DNA from: Orbicella franksi
Taxonomy: Eukaryota
Length of the DNA: 64,000 bases
Assembly (NCBI GenBank): GCA_964199315.1
Contig: OZ116708.1
Span: 2,914,001-2,978,000, forward strand
Reading direction: 5' to 3'
Numbering within the stretch: position 1 is the first letter of the stretch; each line of letters starts with the position of its first letter. Below the pieces are notes generated by a model. The model was given only the letters and a program-made list of their open reading frames with translations. It did no database searches and had not been told where the DNA came from. A program made the translations under genes and the position numbers. Of the stretch, positions 1 through 31,166 are shown piece by piece.

Positions 1-3000
1 TTCATTCCGGCTCTACAGTTAGTTACGCAAACAGCGAAACGCACAACGCTCTGTATCTTGCAATGAAGAAAAACATCGCAATGACAATTCACCTCAACGG
101 CGCAGCAGTGTTAGTGAAGACTTGCTAGACAATTGTTTTTTCGCTTGGCATTTTTACATCAATAATAATAATAGTTAAACAGGGCGGGGGAGAACTTGAA
201 CGACTCGCTCCGATTTGGGTCACCTGGTTCGGATTTGAGTCTGGCAAGGGACCTGGGCAATAACATAACTAAGCGGCATGTTACTCTCATGCTTAGGCCC
301 TCTCCTTACCCAGTAATATGAATGGGTACCTAACTTAGATAGCCTTGAAAAGTGTGAGCAATCATGGTCTGAGTACAGGCTTTGCATGGTATGGTAAATT
401 TAACTGCTACATATTGTGGCTTTTCAACCTACTAATAAACTTCACAGCGATGTAAACTTCAATATGAGACAACGGTCTCAAGCCATACTCGCCCCCAGAG
501 CCTTTCATATTTTTGGTTACGTGGTCAGCGAATTACGTTACGATATTTAAAAATCGAGTGGCCCTGGGGGCAAGCGTTGCGCAAATCTTAGGGGTTGCCC
601 GAATTCGGATCACTTACTTTTCAAGACAAGTACATATTTCAAAAACGAGACAGTAACATTACAAGAATTCTGTTTTTTCCAATGGTATCGTCAAAACGGC
701 TGTCAAACTCGTTTCCAGGGATTTTCCCTTATAATAAGGGAAAACCCTGGGAACGAAGCTAAACGGCATGTTCCCATGATGATGCCATATTAAAACCTTG
801 TGGTATTTTTCAATTTTAGGTCTATGAGGGCCTGTCCTCTTCTGGACAAACACTGGCATCACGTGTGTATCACGTGGACAAATATTGCGGGAAAACTTAA
901 TTTTTATATAGATGGAACCATAAAAAAGGCAAAATCAGAATTTAAAAGTGGGGCCGTTATCAGAGGGGGAGGGGTGGTGATTATCGGCCAGGATCAAGAC
1001 TCGCTTGGAGGGTCTTTTCAAACAATACAATCCCTCGCTGGCCTTCTGAGTCACGTGAACATGTGGAATTTCGTGTTGCGTACTTTTGCTCTGGTTGACA
1101 TGGCAACAGGGTTTGGCACGGAGGCTGGGAACACAATTGCTTGGAGAGACCTGGTCAGGAGTCAAGCGTACGGTCAGGTTAAAGTTGTGCCGATCTCCCG
1201 AGATCCTCCTAGACGTAAGTACAAAAAATCAGTATATAGAATTCAGATTGTTCAGACCTTCAGGGGAGAAGAAATATAGTTCGAATTAAGGTGGCCGAAC
1301 ACAGTTTTCGCGCGCGCTTTTGCTGATGCAATTCAGCGCGCGCACAAGGATTGCAAAAACAAACAAACAAACAAACAAACATGCCGTCAATAGAGCGCGA
1401 TCATTTTATTTACTCAGCACCCGCACTGTCTGTGCTATTTTTCTCTATAATTTAACGCAGTGTATTGATGGCTTTAGTCTTTTATTACAAAGATATTTTG
1501 GAAAAGGTAACGATGCAAAGAACCGAGCAAGTCTCAGCTTTTTCTTTGTTACCGAAAGAACCCAGTTAAATGCAGCGCATGCGTAGTAAGTCAAAAAATT
1601 GCGATTGAATGAAAAATTGCACTCTTGGAAATACGCCTATTTCTCGAGAACCACTCATTAGAATTTCACGAAATTTGGCACGAAAATACTTTAGGAAATA
1701 AGTAACTGGAGTATTGAAAATAATTGAACTTTAACAAAGGAAATTCTAGATATTCCAGTGAACCGTCAACAAGGGATAATTAAAGATCTCTCTGTTAACT
1801 TATTAGCAAAATGGTGTTAGCTTGTGAGAATCGTTACAAGCTTGTTGCACGCAAATTATAAAGAAAATCTAATGACTAGATTTTCTACAAATAAACAAAA
1901 GCGATTTTAAAGACCTGTATTCATGTTGCCATGGCAACGGCACATACGTCAGCTTTACCATCAAAAAACCAAAGTTTGTGTAGTTACCTTGCTTGCTGTC
2001 GTTTTTGGTGACCAAAGGATCAAGGGTTTTAGAGAAAAAGGTGACTGAAACACAGGTATCAAAAACTGTGTTCAGCCACCTTAATAGGATTTGAAATTTT
2101 TAGAACACGGAAAATGGAAAGGTATATATTCCTCGATAGAGCAGCTTCCAATTGATGGTTGATCAAAAGTAACGCGAACTGTTTTTAATTTGATTTACGC
2201 TGCTCTGTTGGTTTCTTGTTGTCGTTGGTTTATTGCGTTGTTTTTGTTTGCTGATTATAGCTTTGGTAGCTGCGGCTTCCTGTGGCTGTGATTGGTCTAA
2301 CGACACACAATTGAAAAACAAATCGCTTTTTTCATAACCTGCTACCATATGATAGTGACAACTGTACTGTCAAGACCTCGAGACATTCTCCTAGTATTGC
2401 CTTTCCTCTTGGTTAATAAGATATATAGAACGGTTCTTACTTCGGTGTCGAAAAGTTATTGGTTTTGCATTACCATGCTACACTATTGGTTTAAAAAACT
2501 CGCGCCACTTTTGATCCAAAACCAAAGCCAACGTAACTCGCTCGCACACTTTTTCCGCGCTTAACATCAGCTATATGTATTTGCTATGAGTTTTGATTGG
2601 TTCTCTGGATTGCCTATGTCCTCAGTTGTGATTGGCCAGAGTGATAACTTTGGTTTTGGTTTTACGGCACTCAGTGGCTAAAATTCCCTCTATGATGCGC
2701 GCCTGCAGGGAATCATAGTAGTTGTACTCATCAAAACTCATCAAGTATGCAGTCCAAGTTGATGAATACAGCTACCATGATTCCCTGCAGGCATGTCTTA
2801 TAGTGGAAATAGACGTTTCCGAATTACCTTTAGCCTCCTTCTCAAAGCGAGTCTTGGTGCCCACCTTACATGTGAAAATGAGATTTCATTCACACTCAAA
2901 TTAAACTCATTTTCATATGAATGACTGCGCACCAGGACTCGCTTTGATAGAGAGGCTTAATGCAACCCGAAAATGGGCTATTGGCCATTTAAAACTGTTC

Positions 3001-6000
3001 TATTCATGGACTTCAAATTTACACTGACCAGTGTTGTGGCCCTTTTGACTTAATTCGCAGGTCCAAAATCTGATTTCAAGTTCGTCTTTCCAACGCAAGG
3101 CACTGAAAACTTTGTCCAGCTTCACAATGCCACGTCAGATTTAGACATGGACCAGTTCACGGCCTGCGCATGGGTGAAGATCTCTGTAGAGAGCATCATA
3201 TCGCTCTTCTGTTACAGAACACCAGAACATCGAAATTCCATCGCCATCCAGCCAAAGGCTGATAGATTTAACGTCCTCATTAATGGTGTTTTTCTGTAAG
3301 TAACGCACCGTCCACACTACGCCGGAGAAATTTGAAAACGCAACAATCACCGGTCATTTTGGAGTTGTGCTCGAGGAAACCTCGGTCAGAGAAATCACAT
3401 GATTATTGCGATGTCATCGTTTTCAAAAAGCTCCGTTTTCAAAATGTTTTCCGTCCACACGAAAACGTGAAGCCGGCGTTTTCAAATTCCTCTGGTTGGA
3501 AGGGCGTTTTCGAAAAGCTCCCTTTTCGTGACGGATTAGTGCGGACTGTAGGCCTACCGTAACGATTCGATTTAGCGCCAGGGGTGCTTATTTACTTTTG
3601 GTACCTCAAGAGAGGGCAATTATTTGAGACAGGGCGCTTATTTCTTCTTTGAGAAACAGCATAATGTTCAAAACAAAAATTAATACTGTATGAACCTCCG
3701 TTGATAGGTACTGTGACGGCGCTGTAATATTATAACATAAGAATAGGGCGCTTATTAGAATGGAGGCGCTTATTGGAAGAGGAGCGCTTATTAATAAAAA
3801 CACATTCGAAGGAGGGCGCTTATTCGAAAGGGGGCGCTTATTGGATGGAGGGCGCTAAATCGAATCATTACAGTAACCGTAGAAATAAAGCTGCGGCACC
3901 TAAAATATACGGCTACGTCCATGTGTGCGTGAGATATAGCTTTCCCGAACTTTATCCATCATTGCCATATATTCACTCAATCCCCCTTACCATGAAATAC
4001 CCCTCCCCCCACACCCTCCACACCCAACCTTTCAAAACGTAGTGATTTGAATTTTCTTTGCTTTTCGTTTTTACGCAGGCATATCGACTACACGACTTTT
4101 TTCGGAACATTCGAGTGGAAACATGTTTGCTTTACGTGGGAAAATAATGCAGGAAACTGGAAATTATACATAAATGGAGAACTGGTCAAATCAGGAACCG
4201 GCTTTCAGATTGGAAAGGTATCTACTTTGTGATATGCATCATTTTCGACGTTTTTTGCGTGCAATTTTATTTCCATTGTCAGGGTCGTAGCAAACATTTC
4301 GCCTTGTTGGTATGGTAGACCTGGCCGCACCTTGCATACGACAGCTGCGCTCGCAGTACAAGCGGCAGTCAAAACTGAGCTGTCCTACCGAAACGACACG
4401 ACAATAGCCTTTTTATTCACAACTAACAAAAATTAAGACAATGCTAAAGTTGCTTTGGCCTCTTCTAATAGTTAATTTAAAAATGTCGGGTTTAATTTGA
4501 CGAGGAACAGTACATTTTGTTCAAAATAAGACAACTATTATCCTACCTGACGACACTCGACGAACTACGAGCGAGTTGCCATGCCGAACGCCGGCGACCC
4601 ATTTTTTGCGCCATATTAGAAGTTGGAGACACAAAATGTTTCATATTTTTCACTTTTTACAATCTGATATGATCTTGGGAATTGTAAATCCCTTTTCATG
4701 AATATTTAATGCCATCTCCAGTGAAAAAAGTTGCAGATTTCAATGCCTTTCCTGTTAACTTATATTGACGTCAGGACAGTAAGCTTTTTCCCGCCTGCTA
4801 AATCCAGATTGGTCAATTCAAATTTCAGGTGCGCCAGCCGTATGCGTGGCAGTTGTTCAAAGGGCGGATTACGCTATCCACTGGATAAATCACTATCCAG
4901 CGGATAGCGTGGTTTGTTTTGTTAACACTTATCCGATGGCTAGCGATTTATCCGGTGGATAACGTTATCCACCCACATGATGCGCAGGAATTTCTCTTTT
5001 CCACAGACCTGGGCGGAAAAATTGTAGACCCGAGCCAATGGATCTATAAGCTAGCTACGTCCTTGATTGTTCTTAACATGAAACTTGCAGATTCAACCAA
5101 ACTAGAGATCATGCCATACTCAAACGAAACGACAGACTTCCTTCATGATCTTTGTTTCTTTTTTCGTGCAGGGTAATGCATAGTGAGAGTCACTTAAGAG
5201 AAGAAAGTCTTAACAGTGAAGGTCAAAATGAAAGGGTAAAATCTGATTGGTCGAAAGCCGTCAAGTTGCATAATACGACTGCAAGTAAAGATCTAATTAA
5301 GGTGTCCCTGGCAACCAAGCCGCGATTGGGTTCATATTAACTGCAATGCCCCTCTCCTCCGCCCCCTGAAAGGTATCGCAGATATCCGCTGGAATCGTAA
5401 AAAAGGGAGCCTAGCCTGGATACCATGGCAGCCTAATTTTTTACTTGCATGCTTAGCCTCACGTCGCCTTACCTTTCTTCTCTTAACATACTCAGGCTCA
5501 TTTTCAATGGTCTTCGAGTCTCCATCTTCCCCAATAACAGAAAGCGTTGCTTTAATTTCAGGTTATTAAAGTAGGCGGTAAAGTTGTGCTGGGACAAAGA
5601 TACTCACAGGTCGCAGATTTTGATGAATTCAAAACAGGACAGTCCTTCATTGGTGAAATCAGTCATCTGAACATTTGGAATACCACGCTGGAGCCAAAGG
5701 TTGTCAGCTCCATGTATCGCGGGTGTGATTTTATTGGCGGGAATTGGTTCAACTGGGCAGCGATCTTACAGGGTGAAGTGGCGGGAGATGTTACCATGGA
5801 AACACCAGCAGACTGTACACTACCAGGTCAGATATAACGTCTTAAAAATGTGTCCCCTTGAAACAGCTAAGTCAGGTGGCACTTAGAAGTGAAGGGAGCG
5901 GAAAATCTTCTGACTTTCGACATTCGACATCCGACATCGAACATCCGACACCCGACATCCGACATCCGACATCCGACATCCGACATCCGACATCTGACAT

Positions 6001-6492
6001 CTGACATCTGACATCTGACATCTGACATCTGACATACGACATACGACATTCGACATTCGACATTCGACATTCGACATACGACATTCAACATTCGACATTC
6101 GACATTCGACATCCAATATCCGACATCCGACACCTGACATCTGACATCAGTCTGGAATCCGAAATTTTTTTTGTTTGACATCTATCGTTTTACGTAATTT
6201 GACGTTCGTTGTCTGAACGTTTGACATGGCACATTTGCGCTTGATGATTAACTTTTTCTGATTGCCTTCATTGTTTACAGATGAAATAAGTTCCAACAAA
6301 AGGAACAAGGTTTGTGCGACCGAGACAATGGATGGATGCACATCTCCTGTGCGTGCATTGTTTGATGGAAATTCAAATGGTCGCAGCAAGAAATGGAGGT
6401 GTTACTTTATAGACGCCTTAACAGATGATGCCTTTGGTCTTGAAGCGTACGACAATGATAAGAATTCAGCATGCTACAAAAGCTTAAATTGA
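1..6492 (+). CDS. Tandem pentraxin-domain protein, 3' part (begins upstream of window). Exons <1-109, 820-1214, 3061-3295, 4079-4217, 5562-5826, 6281-6492
   Basis: All introns GT..AG with consistent phases. Translation gives two pentraxin domains (WHHVCITW...GQDQDSLGGSF...LSHVNMWN; FTACAWVK...WKHVCFTW...FIGEISHLNIWN) and a short Cys-containing C-terminus ending TGA at 6492. AATAAA near 6613. Confidence 0.85.
1290..2080. mobile_element. Non-autonomous TIR element flanked by TTAA (Kolobok-like)
   Basis: TTAA|GGTGGCCGAACACAGTTTT ... AAAACTGTGTTCAGCCACC|TTAA; 19-bp TIR with 1 mismatch; GG..CC ends; no coding capacity. Confidence 0.7.
3304..3902. mobile_element. PIF/Harbinger-like MITE copy interrupted by a second MITE
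   Basis: Shares CGTCCACACTACGCCGGAGAAATTTGAAAACG and the internal body with copies at 31167-31564 and 39280-39658; interrupted at 3557-3873. Confidence 0.65.
3557..3873. mobile_element. TA-flanked (Tc1/mariner-pogo-like) MITE nested in the Harbinger-like MITE
   Basis: TA|CCGTAACGATTCGATTTAGCGCC ... GGCGCTAAATCGAATCATTACAG|TA; internal GGCGCTTATT repeats; related fragment near 17025-17135. Confidence 0.65.
5913..6150. repeat. 7-bp minisatellite (GACATCC/GACATCT/GACATAC/GACATTC)n
   Basis: Directly visible blocks of variant heptamers in the last pentraxin intron. Confidence 0.95.
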
Positions 6493-8628
6493 TTGTTAAA
6501 GACCAAAAAATAATATTTTATTGTATTAATATTAGTATTAGTATAGTTTTTCAGCAGTGTCCCCTAATTAGTATGGTGTATTATTTCCAGGCTATAAGGT
6601 TTTTGACACTTTAATAAAGTTCTCACTCACTCACTCACTCAATGTGGACTGATTGGAGTACGATTCAGAAAGTAATCGTGCGAATAATTTCAAAATTGGA
6701 CGAGCGCGAAGCGAGAGGCCGATTTGAAATTACGAGCACGATTAGTCACTGAATTGTACGACACGAGGACCAGTTACTAATTAATCGTGTCTATAACAAA
6801 TTACGAAATTAGAAAAGTCTTCTGAGAACGTCTTTAGAGCTAAAAAGTCACTAGTGCTCTCCATAAGTTTTAAAAACCGAGGAAACACTGAGAAGGAAAC
6901 CATTGAAGTGCGAGTAATTGACGTGCAGATAGCGTAGGTATCCAATTTAAAAACGTTGTAAATAGATACCTGTAATTGGACAGCCACGTAATCCCTTGCC
7001 GATTACGTGACAAATGGGCGCACGGAGAACCAGTTACGATCGAGAACTTTGTTATAGATATGATCAACTGAGAAAGAGGACTGGACGCAAAAACTAAAGA
7101 GTGCCTGCCTCGACCTTGATTATTCTGGATATCACAGAAACTGAATCTAATTATTGTTTTATTGTGCATTGAACGAAAAAACAAAAAATGGAAGTCATGT
7201 TTTTGCTTCTTCACTGACGGCAAGCAACACAAAGCGAGCGAACTTGACATGATTACCCTTAGAAATCATGCACCGCGGTCATACATGGCATGATTACCCA
7301 TGACCTTGAGTGTTCTTGACATGATTATTGTATAATCTGCAGCTATATGACGTCACAGGCGCTGATTTCGAAAATTCACTGTACGCTTTCGGCCAATCAG
7401 AAAAGAGATAGTGAGTTCAATGTATAATAATGTAAAATAATGAAATCACATCAATACATCCCAGTTGGCCGTGATAACGAGAGCAGAACAAAGAAATATT
7501 AATTTAGGACCAAACTTACTTTTATGAGACATACATCATTGACGATTACTGTAATCAGTTATATTGTTAAAGAAGTTTCGTTTTTGTCATATATTTCAGT
7601 TTTGACCTTGCTTTACTTCCTACTTTCAATTCTTTTATTTTATAACTGACATTTAACGGTATTCACGTTTGTGGGAGGCGCGGTGGCCAAAATGGCTGGC
7701 GCGCTTGACCCCAGTCCTCCGCAGGATGGGCTCCTGTCATCCATAGGAAAAAAGATGGCGACTCTACATTTTTCCACAATACCATACGAGGCTTACAGGG
7801 CCCATAAAATACAAGACCATACAAGGAAAGCCATAGTTTTTGCGATATTTCTCCCTGTGCTAACGACATCGTGTTTGCAAGTGAAGATTTTGAAACTTTT
7901 CTGCACGTTTTTATGAGCGCGCTGTTAATGTTTTCATGCGCTAGGAATCATAGGCAAATGTACCAGTTGCCACCTTTTTTCCTACGGAGGGTTCGAATTA
8001 AACCTATAATGAAGAGAGTGTATACAATATGCTGTATGCATGAGTATACTTATTCTTGTACAAAAGAAGTTGTTCTTGTTAAAATATGACTAAGCCTTAT
8101 TAGTTTCATAAGCTTAAAAGAGAGGCTTATTACTGAGAATAAATAGTTCTTGTTCATTTGATACCAATTGGATCTGATTGCGTCATAAAATATGAAATTA
8201 TGTTGTTTTTGTTGGTATATATATATATACCAACATATAGCCGACAAAACTTAATTTCCGATAAAATTGTCAGAAGGATTTTGTGGTAAAATATTTTTCT
8301 GCCACAAGTTAATATAAAAACGTTTTCGACTTCCAGGCTCCAAGAAGAAAGTTTTAAACAAGAAAAAGTTTGTTTAATTCTTACAACTGTATTAGAAATG
8401 TTGTTGTTGTCGTGTGAAAAGACCCCGAAAACAAGGTTGAAAGCGCATGTGACGAACTTCACGTTTTAACTTGCCCAAAAGGAAGGATAGAAGGAAACGA
8501 AGCCGACCTCTATTACTGTCTATTATATAGCTGAATTTTATTGTAAATGCCAAGACATTTTCTGAATTTTATCACGTACTGCGGTGAGATTATCTAGAGC
8601 TACTTTGTTGTGTTACAAATGTTAGAGA

Positions 8629-24838: not shown

Positions 24839-27800
24839 TTAATTTGTCAAAAGGTCAAAGTGTAGGTCAGGAAAGGATTCATACAGCTTATCCTTGAATT
24901 TCTCTGCAACCTTTTTGGTGCCCTTCTCATTGACATCCAAATGACATTTTTGAACTTTACCACTTGGTTTGCCACTGCCTTCAAGAGTATACACATCAGG
25001 GGGGTCATCCGATTGAACTCCATTGAAGAATCCATTTTTTAAGCAAAACCACGTGCCTTTAAGCTGGTCTAGGAAAGAGTTTGGAACAGAATGTCTTTGG
25101 GTGGTGTGCTCATCAAAACCTTGTTTGGAGGAATATGCTTTCCTGACAGCTTTAAACAGATCAATACTAGACATTATCCTTTCACACATCTTCACTGAGG
25201 TATGTCCTAGAACGGAAAATTACAGACATATTACATAAGTGAGGGTTTTTTTTTCATATTTATAATAATTTCTATACTATGACAATGTTCTGACAACTAC
25301 TTAAAGACTAGACATTTTAAGTGATAGAATTTTTTTTTTTTGATATTTCATGTTCAATAGGTGTCCACAACATTAAAAGAGAGAGTGCCTTGCTTGGCCA
25401 TCTTTACACAAAAATAAAGTTTGATCAAATGAATTCATTTTTGTAAGGTATTTGATTGGTGATGATAACGATAGTTATTTATAACATAGCTAGCAGAGGC
25501 TTGCAATCAAATACCTCCATTGTGCTCACTAAAGCATGAACCAGTTGTTAACTGGCAAATATATATGATTATTTAATTCATTCACAACTTATCTTTAGAC
25601 CTGTGAGCTATATGAAATTTACAAAAGTTGACATGACAAAAATTGTTACAAAGCTGAAATTTTCCCCCAAGAACACATGCTCTTAAGTTCGCATGACATG
25701 TATCAATAAAACTGTTTCCTGCTATACATTGTAGTCTGGGCAACACTACAAAATCCATGATGTCAGAGGGTAACAGTACACCTTTGCCTGCAAATGTTGA
25801 GGGCCATCCTTATGTATTAATTATGAATTATAACAAATCACTTACTCCCTTAGGAAATCAATTAGTTAACTTTGTTTTCCTTGAACAAAATTAACTGTTT
25901 TCCCTCAGGACCAGTCATTTAGTATCAAGTGTATTCAACTGAGTGTCAAATTTGAATTAATTTCATCACTCAGACAATTTTCCCATATGATTAGGGCACT
26001 ATTGTGCTGGTTGGTCAGGACCACCTGTATAATCATTACAACTGAACTGCTCTTACCTGACACATAGATCTTGAGTGGCTGAACTATTTCAGCTTCCACA
26101 AATGCATCCAATTCCATGGCTCCCCCTTTCTTTCCAGAAAGGTTAACTGCACAATTCTTTTGAAGCAATTTGCGGAATGCCAAAGGCCATTTTCCAAGAA
26201 AATTGACAACATGAGCAAATGTTTCTGTGAAATAGTTCTTGAAATTCAAATGAGCATAAGTGGGCAACTGCAGAATATAGCAAACCTCTCTTGCTTGGCC
26301 TAAAACATGTGATGTGGAGATGTCAAACAGTTCAAGGAGAGGCCCATAGTACAGGAACATTCTTGAATAGTACCTGAAAGCAACATTCCTTTCACTTGAT
26401 TGCTCTATCCATTTAATGAATGCATCATATAGCACATCATTGTGGTTCCCTGACTTTCTGAGGCTAGCTGACCTATCTCTCGGACCTGGATAACAGTCAC
26501 TTTTAGCAAATTCAATTGCAGCAGCTATTCCATATGACCTAGCACAGTCTTGTACTGCTTCTTTTATTCGATCTTGATTTCCTGTCTCAAACTTTTTCTT
26601 CTTGAAAACATCAGAAATGAGCTTTGGTCTCTTCATTACCTTGTTGGCAATGTAGTGGAATCCACCAGGTCCTTGTTCTTTAAAACAGGCTTCACAAAGG
26701 TATCCTTTTGTATGCAGATCACCTGGTATTATCCCTGCCCACTCGTAAGCTGAAGCTCTCCCCATCACTCCCCTGATAGTTTTGCAGGTGCCTTGATCTC
26801 CTACTAAGCCTGTAACAAATCCTTCCGAGTTACGATCCACCTGTGATACTGGTTCATCAGATCCATCCCTGATCAAAATATCTGTTCTCTTAAAGGAGTC
26901 ATCATAACCTGATATGTCATCATCCTCATTATCTGACGTTTGTGGGTTCAGTACTTCATATATTTCAGCTAGTTGCATTTGTTCTGCAATTTTAAGTGGG
27001 CATGGAATATTTGTGAACAAAGGCCCTCTCACACAAGCTCTGTGATTAACCAGAAGTTCACAGACCTGTTTGTTTTTCTTTATCACTGCTATTACAAGAG
27101 GTGTTGCACCACACATTTCTTTTGCATTTGGGTTGCAGCCAGCTTGCATAAGACAACAAGCAAGGTCATAGTTTCCTTGTTCCACAGCCATATGTAACAA
27201 GGTACGGCCAAGATGGTCTCTAACATCCTGCAGGTTAATGTTGCTCAAGTCTTGAATAACACGTTCCACTGAATCACTTTGTTTAGATTCCCACACCTTA
27301 TCTGCAATGTTATTATACAGCGCAGTGAAAACTTGATCACACTTTGCAAAGCGACTCTTAGCTTGCTGAATAGTTGTTCTATTTTCATCATCAGAATCAC
27401 CTGCAAGCTCATCATCACCATCATCATTTGTGGTTAACTCTTGAGAACTGTCAAACTCTTTTTCTGTTGCCTCCAAGGTTTTTAATAAGTCAGCCATTTC
27501 ATCTCTGTGTTCATACAACATGATTAAAAACTCAACATGTTCCCTGGCTTTTTTAAGGCTGAAATTCCTGTTCCTTTTGTCAAATGGCAATGTTTCCAGT
27601 TTGTCCACTTTATTGCAAAGGCCAAATTCCTCAGCAAACTGATCTAGAATCACACTTGTTCCTGTAAGGGTTGCATTATTTTCTAATGACAGAGGTAATA
27701 TGTGAACATCAGTCTTCACTGTGGACATACTTGTGTCAAAAATGTTTTCAATGCTGGGAATGCTCAGTTTCACATTCTGTTGGGTACAACCATCAGCATT

Positions 27801-29619
27801 TGACAACCACTGGTTACATTGTTTTTCATTCATTTCACAAATGGGTTTTTCATGTGGTGGAATCTTGTTCAATCCATCATAAAGCAACTGGAGAATGTAA
27901 CTTTTACTGAACTTCTGCCAAATTAAAAAATGTTCATTACAGTTTTCCAATTGTATATTGTTAGCATTCCACCCTACCACATTGTCCTGGCTCTGCAGTG
28001 AAGTGTCAGGTGTACTCAACAAATCTTCAATGCCAGTGATGTCTGGGTTTAGTAATCCTCTAACAGTGAAATTCCACATGTTCACCTTTGGCACCTTAAA
28101 CAACCTATGGTGTCTTTGATATCCCCTGTGAATGTTCACATTGTCCAATAGCAAAAACAAGGGTTTCTCTGCTGGTATATTAGAGTGCAGTTTGTCAAAC
28201 TTTTTCCTGTTGTACCTGTCCAGGAATGACATAAGAGTGTCCCAGTGAAGAGTTAATCCAACTTTATTCAGCATATTGACCATTCGTGTACCAGCTCCAT
28301 AAGCAACCAGAAGAATTGTAAAAACTAATGTTACATCATTTTGGCACTGATTGTTTCTCAGGCTCATTAATAGGCTTAGAGAGTGAACTGCTCCTTTCTC
28401 CTTTCTCCTGTCGTCACTTGGAAAGAGAGTCTTAACAATGTCAAAGAGAAAGGGAAACTTCTCTGCAACATTGTTTACAAGATCTGTAAAAATCTCCTCA
28501 TTGATAAAGACTTCCTCACCACTTCTCAATCCAAAACTTAATGTTTTTGATAACAAGTCTACCTCCTCTGTAAGTTTTGTTTTCTCTGACTGAGAAAGTG
28601 TGGATGACTGATCAGTTCTCAATAAAAATTGAATTTCACGCTCATAGATCTTGTCAAGTAATTCTGATTTAGCAGTTAACAATTCAGTTTCCGTTTTGTA
28701 AGCCAACAAAAGTGCTTGCAAGGCATTAGTCTCTCCAGCAGTTACCTTGGCAATAATATCCTCCAGAAGATCATTTCCTCTTTTTCTTGACTCAGCAATA
28801 AGGGCTTGTACATTAGCTATTTCACTATCCACAGTAACTGTTCCTGATTTATCATCTTCACAGTTAAAAGAAACTGCTTTTCTGATGTTAGTATAAACCC
28901 CTTTTCTTTTATTTAATTTGGAAGAGGGGAATGTTTTTGTTACAGCACGTGTGGCCAGCCCTTTCTCTTCTTTGTTTAACTGTAAAGCACTGAGAATGGA
29001 TTCTTGTGTGGCTTGTTTCCCTGGACTTTCCACAAACCTTTCTTGGAGAACAGAAGAAAACGTTTCTTTCCTGTCCTTGTAAAATCGTCCACTTAAATTC
29101 TGTCGAGACCGTTTACTGGCGGGCTCAACCTTCGATGGTGTTAACTGTCTTTTCTGTGGGTCATCTAAAAAACCAAAGGAGGTTGTGAGGTTTTCGTTTA
29201 AAGGATTTACACATGGCAAAATGGCCACCAAAAGCACATAAAGCACTTAAAATAGAGCATTTCAATAACACAGCATATATATACAAAAGGAGATACGGCC
29301 GGATGTAGAAAAAAATTAAATAAGATTGAAACGGATTGCGATACCGATTTTTTGAAAAATTAGTGGACGGAACAGTTTTCAAAGTTTAAATCGTTTGTTT
29401 GTAACTTTTTATATGCTTAATTGTTACTTCCGAGAGACAGATTTGTTTGTAACGAAGCTATGGCTTTGTAAAGTTAGTGAACTAAAGGCCGAAATTTAAT
29501 AAACGAAATGCAGCTAGTAGGGATAAAAGACAAAAAGAAGACATAGAAGAGGAATATTTACCTTCAAGAGACATCTCTTGGAAGGAAATGTCAAGCGCCT
29601 CCTCTCTTGCTTCCGCCAT
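24839..29619 (-). CDS. Transposase-like protein (Academ/DUF6589-like DDE core) with ankyrin repeats, 1177 aa. Exons 29619-29562, 29164-26057, 25206-24839
   Basis: Phase-1 GT..AG junctions join MAEAREEALDISFQEMSLE to the 3.1-kb open exon and to the 24839..25195 ORF without stops. Candidate catalytic motifs LLLDNVNI, LVGDQGT, PGDLHTKG, LDAFVEAEIV; ankyrin repeats GRTLLHMAVEQGNYDLACCLMQAGCNPNAKE / GATPLVIAVIKKNKQVCELLVNHRA. Confidence 0.82.
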
Positions 29620-31166
29620 TTTGACATTTGACCTCCAAAAAACAACGTACTTGTCACTACTCCCCATAGTTTCAGCCAGGTTCCAGGGGGGGCTTCGGAG
29701 AACAATATTTTTGCTGTTTTTTGCGAAAATATGTAACGTTGTCTGGAAAATAACGATTGCTAATTGTAGTAGCATACCTAGCGCTGATTTTTGCCAAGTT
29801 TCAAGCTCGCAAAGTCCGCGAGGGCTGAGAAATTGATCAATGTACCAGAAAACGACAAGGATGTACCAGAAAACGACAAGCTTCTGGCAGAGGTTCCCCG
29901 CTCAGTGGATCCCGTTCTTTTGCGCCTGCACCCACCTTGCCCAGCGGATTTTTACAACGAAAGCCCCATTGGGAACCTCTGCGGAGGAGAGAGTAGTCTG
30001 TTGATGTTACCTCGATTCACCACGAGGAACAAGATATCTTGTTCAAGGTTTCATGTTTTTCATTTGCAACAATCTGTTCCGGTTTCTGGCATTTTAAACC
30101 CCTGTCTGTGAATATTTTATCGCTCTCTCTGTGAAGAAAAGTGGCGCGACTTCAATGCCTTTCTATTAACATAGATGTGTTATTCAGACAGTGCTGTTTC
30201 AGTTTTTGCCTGCTGAGTGCTGATTATTTTCAGTCAAATTTCACAGACACTGGCCTTATCGGCAAGTTAGTCATCTTAGCATCAAACCCCAGTCTCCCTG
30301 CTTATCTTGACGAATTGCAGCCTGGCGGCGCCTGGCCACAAGCCATTGGACATTTTTCTCACACCACTGCCCGTTTCTATGGAGAAATAAAAAAAACAAT
30401 GACAAAATTTGTACATCTTACGATCGTTCTTCAATCAGGTGCTTTAAGGACGGCCCAGTATAAAAATCAAAAACCGAAAGTTTACTTATTTTCACGGATG
30501 AGGTTTACGGATCATCTCACTTTGATCTCAAATAATGATCATTGAATTGATTCATAACGTCCTCAGAGGAAACAAAATTCAATCACAAAAATCATATAAT
30601 TATTTATTCTAGTTAATTAATTCTAACTTTAACAGGAGTACCGAATTGGGTCTAATTTCGTATTTTTTCTTTGTTTTTTCTACCAAACATGCAAACGACG
30701 TGTTTTCCGGCATTGAAACCACAAAGTTTTTAAAATGTTGGTCTACTTTATAAGCTTAGAAATTGAAAATAATGCTTCACATTTAATTACACGCAAATAT
30801 GTTTTCAAGAGAAAATGATGATTGATGTTTCCTAATACAGCAATCGCTCGCCAAACTAGGACAGGAAATGAGTCGCCAATTGAAGTGCCTTCAAGTCTAG
30901 AGTATATATTTGCGACAAATGAGCTAGGTTGATTATTACAAACAGGCTTCGAAGAAGTAAGATGCAATAATTCAGAACCAATGGCAGTTAACTGAATCAA
31001 AACACTGGAAATGCAGCATCCCAATATTTTATTTTTTAATAGAATTAACTGCGGCCGTGTATCGGTCTACGATCAGTTATACGATCCAGCCGAATTTGAA
31101 AATGATGATGCACATTTAAATGCAAGGAAATCTATTAATCTATTAATCTCCTGCCGTGATCGATTA

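Follow-up and report, generated by a model that had tools for sequence, protein, structure and literature searches.

The Academ superfamily is among the least studied superfamilies of eukaryotic DNA transposons, and to our knowledge, there is no biochemical or structural characterisation of any of its transposases. Likewise, we know of no structurally characterised transposase in which the loop between helix α1 and strand β4 of the RNase H fold serves as an insertion site. The usual position of the insertion domain, as in Hermes, RAG1, Tn5 and the P element, lies between strand β5 and helix α4, and a [C/D](2)H motif together with an insertion domain is found in the P, hAT and related transposases (PMC8230255). 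The AcademH DNA transposons (Kojima, 2020, Mob DNA 11:15; cited in PMC10045372 and PMC10799480) are defined, in the passage of PMC10045372 that refers to this work, by a helicase gene and target-site duplications of 9-10 bp. The present study deals with a stretch of 64,000 nucleotides from the coral Orbicella franksi (assembly GCA_964199315.1, contig OZ116708.1, positions 2,914,001 to 2,978,000), referred to here as the window, in which an intact cut-and-paste DNA transposon of about 9.6 kb spans positions 20374-29993 and carries terminal inverted repeats, a 9-bp target-site duplication and a RecQ helicase gene that is convergent with the transposase gene. The transposase contains ankyrin repeats, and an earlier note, made from the letters of the DNA alone, had placed these repeats inside the putative catalytic core. 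According to our analysis, the protein is probably an intact AcademH transposase with a single RNase H fold, in which the ankyrin module of the α1-β4 loop forms a protein-docking surface kept by selection for a partner in transposition.

The transposase open reading frame (ORF) comprises 1103 codons and is located at 25935-29246 on the minus strand, to which all transposase features described below belong. On this frame, the coordinates given in the earlier note were correct throughout: the candidate catalytic residues are D368 in LLLDNVN (codon 28143-28145), D817 in VGDQGT (26796-26798) and E1051 in LDAFVE (26094-26096), the PGDLH motif comprises residues 841-845, and the proposed ankyrin segment at 26950-27225 corresponds to residues 675-766. 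A hidden Markov model scan for the two domains expected in such a protein found both above the Pfam thresholds, namely Ank at residues 657-737 (E 4.9e-10, 39.6 bits, cutoff 21.1) and DUF6589 at residues 809-1054 (E 2.3e-12, profile positions 104-361 of 410); the related ankyrin profiles Ank_2 (E 4.8e-9, 37.1 bits, cutoff 27.3) and Ank_3 (31.6 bits, cutoff 22.3) matched as well. The position of the module between the first and the second catalytic aspartate was confirmed, and can be given more exactly as the α1-β4 loop. The residues assigned to the active site are strongly conserved in the family: D368 is present in 25 of the 26 sequences that cover it and both asparagines of the DNxN motif in 24 of 24, D817, G842, D843 and H845 occur in all 56 sequences, and D1047 and E1051 in 53 of 53. 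The phenylalanine and the threonine of the MWNFT motif are invariant in every covering sequence.

Two AlphaFold models were used to place these residues in a fold. The first contained the whole ORF, was based on 17 sequences and was of mediocre quality, with a predicted local distance difference test score (pLDDT) of 65, whereas the second, restricted to residues 300-1065 and based on 56 sequences, was confident, with a pLDDT of 86.4 and a predicted template modelling score (pTM) of 0.84. Both models agree on the order of the secondary-structure elements, in which the topology β1-β2-β3-α1-β4-α2-β5...α4 is present, with one aspartate on β1, one after β4 and the glutamate on α4. Strands β1 and β2 (residues 364-373 and 390-400; 28047-28157) contain D368 within LLLDNVNIHRG and the sequence MWNFTVRGLL as β2, and they are separated from β3 by a helical insert (residues 401-512). 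Strand β3 (VHILPLSL, residues 513-520) and helix α1 (residues 527-541) are encoded by 27624-27710. On the other side of the module, the segment 26712-26813 encodes β4 (residues ~812-816) with D817, a helix (residues 818-830), β5 (residues 837-841) and the D843xH845 motif (26712-26720). An all-helical insertion domain of about 200 residues (residues ~846-1045; 26112-26711) lies between β5 and α4, and helix α4 (residues 1046-1063; 26058-26111) carries D1047 and the candidate catalytic E1051.

The assignment to the transposase fold rests on structural matches of the first model; the wide search with the second model was dominated by ankyrin domains, and Foldseek searches of the PDB with both models returned only ankyrin proteins and no transposase match. 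The best wide match was the P element transposase of Drosophila (6p5a_A, Z 11.7, 325 residues, model residues 295-1068). In addition, the catalytic core of the simian immunodeficiency virus integrase (chain residues 57-164), which contains D64, D116 and E152, aligned to model residues 361-1064 over 104 residues with a Z of 8.8 and a root-mean-square deviation (rmsd) of 3.0. Since both alignments extend across both sides of the ankyrin module, the flanking segments appear to form one RNase H-like domain. The D/D/E assignment proposed in the earlier note fits the predicted topology, the canonical positions and the family-wide conservation.

A core comprising only residues 809-1065, with D817, D843 and E1051 as its acidic residues and with LLLDNVN in a separate N-terminal domain, would instead place the ankyrin repeats upstream of the catalytic domain. 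Such an arrangement would agree with the significant DUF6589 match, which begins only at residue 809, with the many database homologues of about 650 residues that start after residue 440, and with the invariance of D843. However, D817 and D843 are 26 residues apart, a distance filled by β4, one helix and β5, which leaves no room for β2, β3 and α1, and the integrase core alignment begins as early as model residue 361 and ends at 1064. The invariance, where covered, of both asparagines of DNxN and of two residues of MWNFT also argues against a separate N-terminal domain, and weak N-terminal DUF6589 matches at residues 457-554 are located ahead of the ankyrin domain. The homologues of about 650 residues, in which D368 seems to be missing, are single exons: in the related locus L003, an upstream ORF (3362-3697) carries ILLMDNINMYRG...MWNFTGRG, and this ORF removes the reading of a core located only downstream of the ankyrin repeats. 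We therefore regard an ankyrin domain upstream of the catalytic core as very unlikely.

The clade-specific module inserted into the single RNase H fold comprises residues 542-811 (about 270 residues; 26814-27623) and occupies the α1-β4 loop, where the DUF6589 profile breaks. In two family members, profile positions 10-98 and 58-108 of DUF6589 are matched weakly, and both matches fall in one register on residues 457-544 and 504-554; since the split match ends at residue 554 and resumes at residue 809 with profile position 104, residues ~555-808 are extra compared with the family consensus. Ankyrin-less DUF6589 proteins from the AlphaFold database align over the whole model with 394-477 residues versus about 760 query residues (A0A0H2QZB8, residues 84-560 versus query residues 6-765; A0A371CQR5, residues 14-448 versus 2-765) and are about 300 residues shorter across the aligned span. 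A cnidarian cluster of ankyrin-less DUF6589 proteins from the ESM Atlas aligns over 458 residues to model residues 1-757 with an rmsd of 4.4 Å. Judging from these models, the ankyrin-less relatives are predicted to have only a short α1-β4 loop at the site of the module, and the module is predicted to be an additional insertion at an unusual site, besides the usual domain between β5 and α4.

Within the module, a long helix (residues 564-600) precedes a first linker, which is acidic and disordered; then come the ankyrin domain with its four repeats and a further acidic linker. Linker 1 (residues 601-625; 27372-27446) shows pLDDT values below 50 in both models and contains NDDGDDELAGDSDDE (residues 606-620), and linker 2 (residues 770-808; 26823-26939) shows low pLDDT values at residues 787-799, contains SDNEDDDISGYDDS (residues 771-784) and has the semi-conserved pattern SDxEDDxIxxYD. 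The two acidic stretches thus bracket the ankyrin segment in the way the earlier note had stated. In all 17 homologues, aspartate and glutamate make up 25-41% of linker 1 at a sequence identity of only 0.20; the mean pairwise identity of the acidic linkers is 0.16-0.20, and the ratio of nonsynonymous to synonymous substitution rates (dN/dS) of linker 1 is 0.18. Because β4 joins the sheet, according to the canonical topology, at an edge far from the catalytic carboxylates, the site is presumably permissive, and an insertion in the α1-β4 loop would not need to disturb catalysis. The module, which had been described as captured, may indeed have been acquired in this way; neither a donor gene nor intron boundaries around the module were seen.

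The ankyrin domain itself (residues ~633-769; 26940-27350) has pLDDT values of 90-97. From the letters alone, two clear repeats and a degenerate third had been recognised; the two canonical repeats stand (residues 677-744; 27015-27218), while the structure contains about four, namely an N-cap, the two canonical repeats and a C-cap. In the AlphaFold prediction, a helix at residues 626-657 continues into the ankyrin helices up to residue ~766. Model residues 334-470, which correspond to residues 633-769, can be superimposed on solved ankyrin domains and DARPins over 120-130 residues at about 3 Å with Z values of 13-14, and Foldseek gave a probability of 1.00 to DARPins. The best PDB sequence matches were AnkR, AnkB and DARPins, which characterises the domain as a generic, consensus-like ankyrin. 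An ankyrin domain of the BARD1 or TONSL type, which reads histone H4K20me0, was considered and rejected, as neither protein was among the best 60 PDB sequence matches; the name "BARD1" of the homologues P0012 and P0272 is an automatic annotation.

Among 56 members with identities down to 28%, the residues D677, R681, H685, A687, E689, G703, N707, E710, C712, G713, T715 and P716 are conserved in at least 90% of the sequences. The framework residues reaching this level are H685, A687, G703, N707, G713, T715, P716, V721, L732 and A737. R681, E689 and C712 are located at positions that vary among generic ankyrins and, in DARPins, belong to the recognition surface. The mean pairwise identity of the ankyrin repeats is 0.46, compared with 0.52-0.66 for the segments of the catalytic core, and the approximate dN/dS relative to a copy with 78% identity is 0.09 for the ankyrin repeats and 0.05-0.12 for the catalytic core. 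These comparisons point to purifying selection on the ankyrin module. Transposons do capture host fragments, and the ankyrin score of the amphioxus homologue P0054 is weak (Ank_2, E 1.4e-4), as would be expected if the segment were a neutral or decaying passenger of one transposon lineage. However, a passenger would not be expected to show a dN/dS equal to that of the catalytic core or about a dozen residues conserved at the level described above, nor would it be kept in frame in every lineage examined, as is the case for this module. A passenger without function is therefore highly improbable.

The same fusion was sought in other invertebrates, and an ankyrin domain was found in every sequence-detected relative that covers the region. 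These relatives come from the octocorals Paramuricea and Dendronephthya, the stony coral Porites, the anemone Actinostola, an eukprot entry and several Branchiostoma. When ankyrin-less relatives were sought by word-based sequence searches, all matches were either relatives with the ankyrin domain or ankyrin proteins unrelated to the family, and the best 150 matches of a profile search were all close relatives. Ankyrin-less relatives were seen only through the structure searches and the split Pfam match, and a feature search of the ESM Atlas was uninformative, with scores of at most 0.86. Two observations on individual homologues are added here. The ankyrin segment of the Branchiostoma proteins P0054, P0272, P0273 and P0274, one of which is automatically named "BARD1", is degenerate, and these proteins are 82-97% identical among three species; they could be a domesticated derivative or shared transposon copies. 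In the gene model P0046 from Actinostola sp., the DUF6589 core is joined to a reverse-transcriptase domain (PF00078), probably as the result of a chimeric prediction across nested transposons.

The boundaries of the element are well defined. The 9-mer TAGTCTGTT is found at 20365-20373 and again at 29994-30002, directly outside both inverted repeats, and represents the left and right target-site duplication. The left inverted repeat (20374-20394, plus strand) starts with CTCTCTCCTCCGCAGAGG and forms a 21-nt arm that pairs with the right repeat (29973-29993, minus strand) with 95% complementarity; within the window, the 18-mer CTCTCTCCTCCGCAGAGG has exactly two occurrences, in inverted orientation at 20374 and 29993, where 0 would be expected by chance. 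Between the repeats, and convergent with the transposase gene, an ORF of 533 amino acids on the plus strand (22427-24028) encodes a RecQ-like helicase with the Pfam domains DEAD (1.4e-21), Helicase_C (5.3e-20), RecQ_Zn_bind (5.5e-9) and RQC (9.5e-8). A helicase neighbour was also found at five related loci (L001, L002, L003, L005 and L006), and two of these, L005 with 78% and L001 with 44% protein identity, show similar termini, the same convergent helicase and 9-bp target-site duplications (AACCGGGTG and GGGAAAAAA, respectively). The nearest database protein, P0001, is 99% identical, and its 90% cluster contains 50 members, many of which are copies with the full length of 1069 amino acids located on different contigs. 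This abundance of near-identical copies suggests that the transposon family was recently active, and the intact copies, the target-site duplications and the many near-identical copies together would be compatible with a catalytically competent transposase.

With its 9-bp target-site duplication, the separate RecQ-like helicase gene inside the element and the terminal inverted repeats, the element is of the AcademH type; on the side of sequence and structure, this placement is based on the Pfam DUF6589 match and on structural matches to fungal and animal DUF6589 proteins. A domesticated host gene that joins ankyrin repeats to a former transposase domain could likewise contain an intron, as the gene described here does, relatives are automatically annotated as "BARD1" or "ankyrin repeat protein", and the amphioxus copies are conserved between species. 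Against this stand the location of the copy between perfect 18-nt inverted repeats with a 9-bp target-site duplication and an adjoining helicase gene, the dozens of near-identical copies and the intact catalytic residues, which make domestication the least probable of the explanations considered.

In the ankyrin domain, the invariant residues R681, E689 and C712 occupy positions classically used by ankyrins for recognition, which favours a single conserved ligand or interface. We propose that the domain would act as a docking surface maintained by selection that links the transposase to a partner during transposition. The preferred partner would be a conserved factor of the host that belongs to chromatin or to the target site, in analogy to the PHD finger in a different lineage of animal AcademH elements; a PHD finger is reportedly the accessory domain of animal AcademH, and one PHD-type protein was among the structural relatives of the model. 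In second place, the partner might be the RecQ helicase of the element itself, and in third place another transposase subunit or the transposase's own core, with which the high pTM would be compatible. As a tentative generalisation, which we consider possible rather than probable, animal AcademH elements could have repeatedly gained tethering domains, such as the PHD finger or the ankyrin repeats inside the fold, that steer the transposase to a chromatin state or host factor or couple the RecQ helicase to the active site.

The main competitor of an external partner is a largely internal role, in which the module would serve as a scaffold for oligomerisation or synapsis, or as an autoinhibitory unit with the acidic linkers as DNA mimics. 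The pTM of 0.84 for the whole model suggests a defined placement of the ankyrin domain relative to the core, the acidic composition of linker 1 is kept without conservation of its sequence, and insertion domains of other transposases work within the transpososome (PMC8230255). However, ankyrin domains typically bind between molecules, and the ankyrin-less relatives build the same core without the module, so that a mainly internal role appears rather doubtful.

Several points weigh against the docking surface for a transposition partner favoured here, or against single steps leading to it. Helicases are also encoded by AcademH elements that have no ankyrin repeats, so that the helicase does not in general depend on the ankyrin domain. 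Given the high pTM, the ankyrin domain may be packed against the core, and its conserved surface could then be an interface within the transposase itself. With a dS of 1.1-1.4, which is near saturation, the dN/dS ratios are approximations. That D368, D817 and E1051 converge on one site is a prediction from the topology and the structural alignments, and the equation of DUF6589 with the Academ transposase is based on the context, namely the helicase and the length of the duplication. Finally, two polyA RNA-seq runs, which carry the same species label as a run that contains the sequence, gave zero reads over 25420-29500, few reads on 24600-25419 and no splice joints. With essentially no polyA reads over the coding region, there is no expression support for this copy, and the RNA gives no sign that the module is spliced out either. 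Metatranscriptome contigs are colinear with the DNA, including the intron, and may be derived from DNA.

The transposase gene is divided into a main exon (26057-29246), which encodes ORF residues 1-1064 in an open frame and is 99% identical to P0001, a predicted phase-1 GT-AG intron of 850 nt after YVSG (25207-26056) and a 3' exon with the stop codon (24839-25206), which encodes the conserved C-terminus HTSVKMCERIM...FPDLHFDLLTN. The intron is predicted from homology and from its splice signals, with the donor G/GTAAGA at 26057/26056 and the acceptor TTCTAG ending at 25207. Use of the AG at 25208-25207 restores the sequence ...YVSG/HTSVKMCER..., as found in the continuous C-termini of P0010, P0012 and P0017, of which P0010 is intronless at the predicted site. 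The claim of one uninterrupted exon therefore holds for the ankyrin module and the D/D/E residues, which share an exon, and does not hold for the gene, which is not single-exon. The intron content varies among the subfamilies, from the intronless P0010 to at least four exons in L003. In this locus of the Porites-type subfamily, the transposase gene extends over 2102-7873 with ORFs at 2102-2746, 3362-3697, 4792-6774 and 7487-7873, and none of its introns flanks the ankyrin module.

At the N-terminus of the coral transposase, a 5' exon is likely because ATG is absent from the first ~295 codons of the ORF. An upstream ORF at 29482-29775 on the minus strand, within the region 29247-29972, contains MAEAREEALDISFQEMSLEG and could be such a 5' exon. 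Pfam scans of the N-terminal 249 amino acids and of the 3' exon gave no match. Residues 56-126 (28869-29081, minus strand) are predicted to form a helix-strand-helix segment that matches chain 8zjr_M of the nucleosome-bound RFX5 complex with a Z of 8.8, and may bind the terminal repeats as a winged-helix-like DNA-binding domain. Further on, residues 142-235 are predicted to form a long coiled coil.

Two further observations concern the remaining parts of the element. Just inside the left inverted repeat and upstream of the helicase, an ORF of 132 amino acids (20483-20881, plus strand) contains the C2H2-like stretch CPHKDC...HHFRIRH and may belong to the helicase gene as a 5' exon; a Pfam scan of this ORF (20483-20878) gave no match. 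Shortly after the stop codon of the transposase gene, a segment of about 33 bp at 24608-24642 shows very high depth in the RNA libraries (word depth of 686 in X1), and the reads diverge into many unrelated sequences on both sides; it is a short motif that is highly repeated or widely shared.

Neither for Academ transposases nor for the core of any DDE transposase did our literature searches, whose scope did not include the primary AcademH paper and the Repbase AcademH entries, reveal a report of ankyrin repeats. The clade described here offers an intact, apparently young Academ element with a confident model. If the model is correct, the RNase H fold accepts a generic protein-interaction domain in the α1-β4 loop, besides the usual insertion between β5 and α4. 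Should the ankyrin domain select targets or recruit the helicase, it would provide a handle on the mechanism of helicase-carrying transposons and on the acquisition of targeting modules, as well as a permissive site at which DDE transposases could be equipped with tethering domains. A tethering or coupling function, if true, would mean that a DDE enzyme can be given target choice, or a link to its helicase, in a previously unknown way, while an ankyrin domain that is only a scaffold would remain a modest architectural curiosity.

In comparison with known systems, the element shares with AcademH the DDE transposase, the separate RecQ-like helicase gene, the terminal inverted repeats, target-site duplications of 9-10 bp and the occurrence in animals. 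The transposase matches Pfam DUF6589, and so do proteins from fungi and animals that share its fold and lack ankyrin repeats. It differs in the module of about 270 residues with a four-repeat ankyrin domain in the α1-β4 loop of the RNase H fold. Like the coral transposase, the P element transposase and THAP9 (6p5a) have an RNase H fold that is broken by a helical insertion domain between β5 and α4, and a motif of an acidic residue and a histidine right after β5, which is D843xH845 here and [C/D](2)H in the P and hAT groups. However, the P element has a single insertion, the GTP-binding domain, at the β5-α4 position, whereas the coral transposase has the extra ankyrin-bearing insertion at α1-β4; furthermore, there is no sequence similarity between the two, and the coral transposase lacks a THAP domain. 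Hermes, RAG1 and Tn5 likewise illustrate that the RNase H fold of DDE enzymes accepts large inserted domains that contribute to the reaction, but these are lineage-specific folds at the β5-α4 position (PMC8230255), and none of them is a generic interaction repeat or is located in the α1-β4 loop. The ankyrin domain itself corresponds to DARPins of the N2C type, AnkR and AnkB with 24-29% identity, an rmsd of about 3 Å over 110-130 residues and the same TPLH, GxxxN and hairpin framework residues. In contrast to these proteins, it is nested in an enzyme fold between acidic disordered linkers, and R681, E689 and C712 are fixed.

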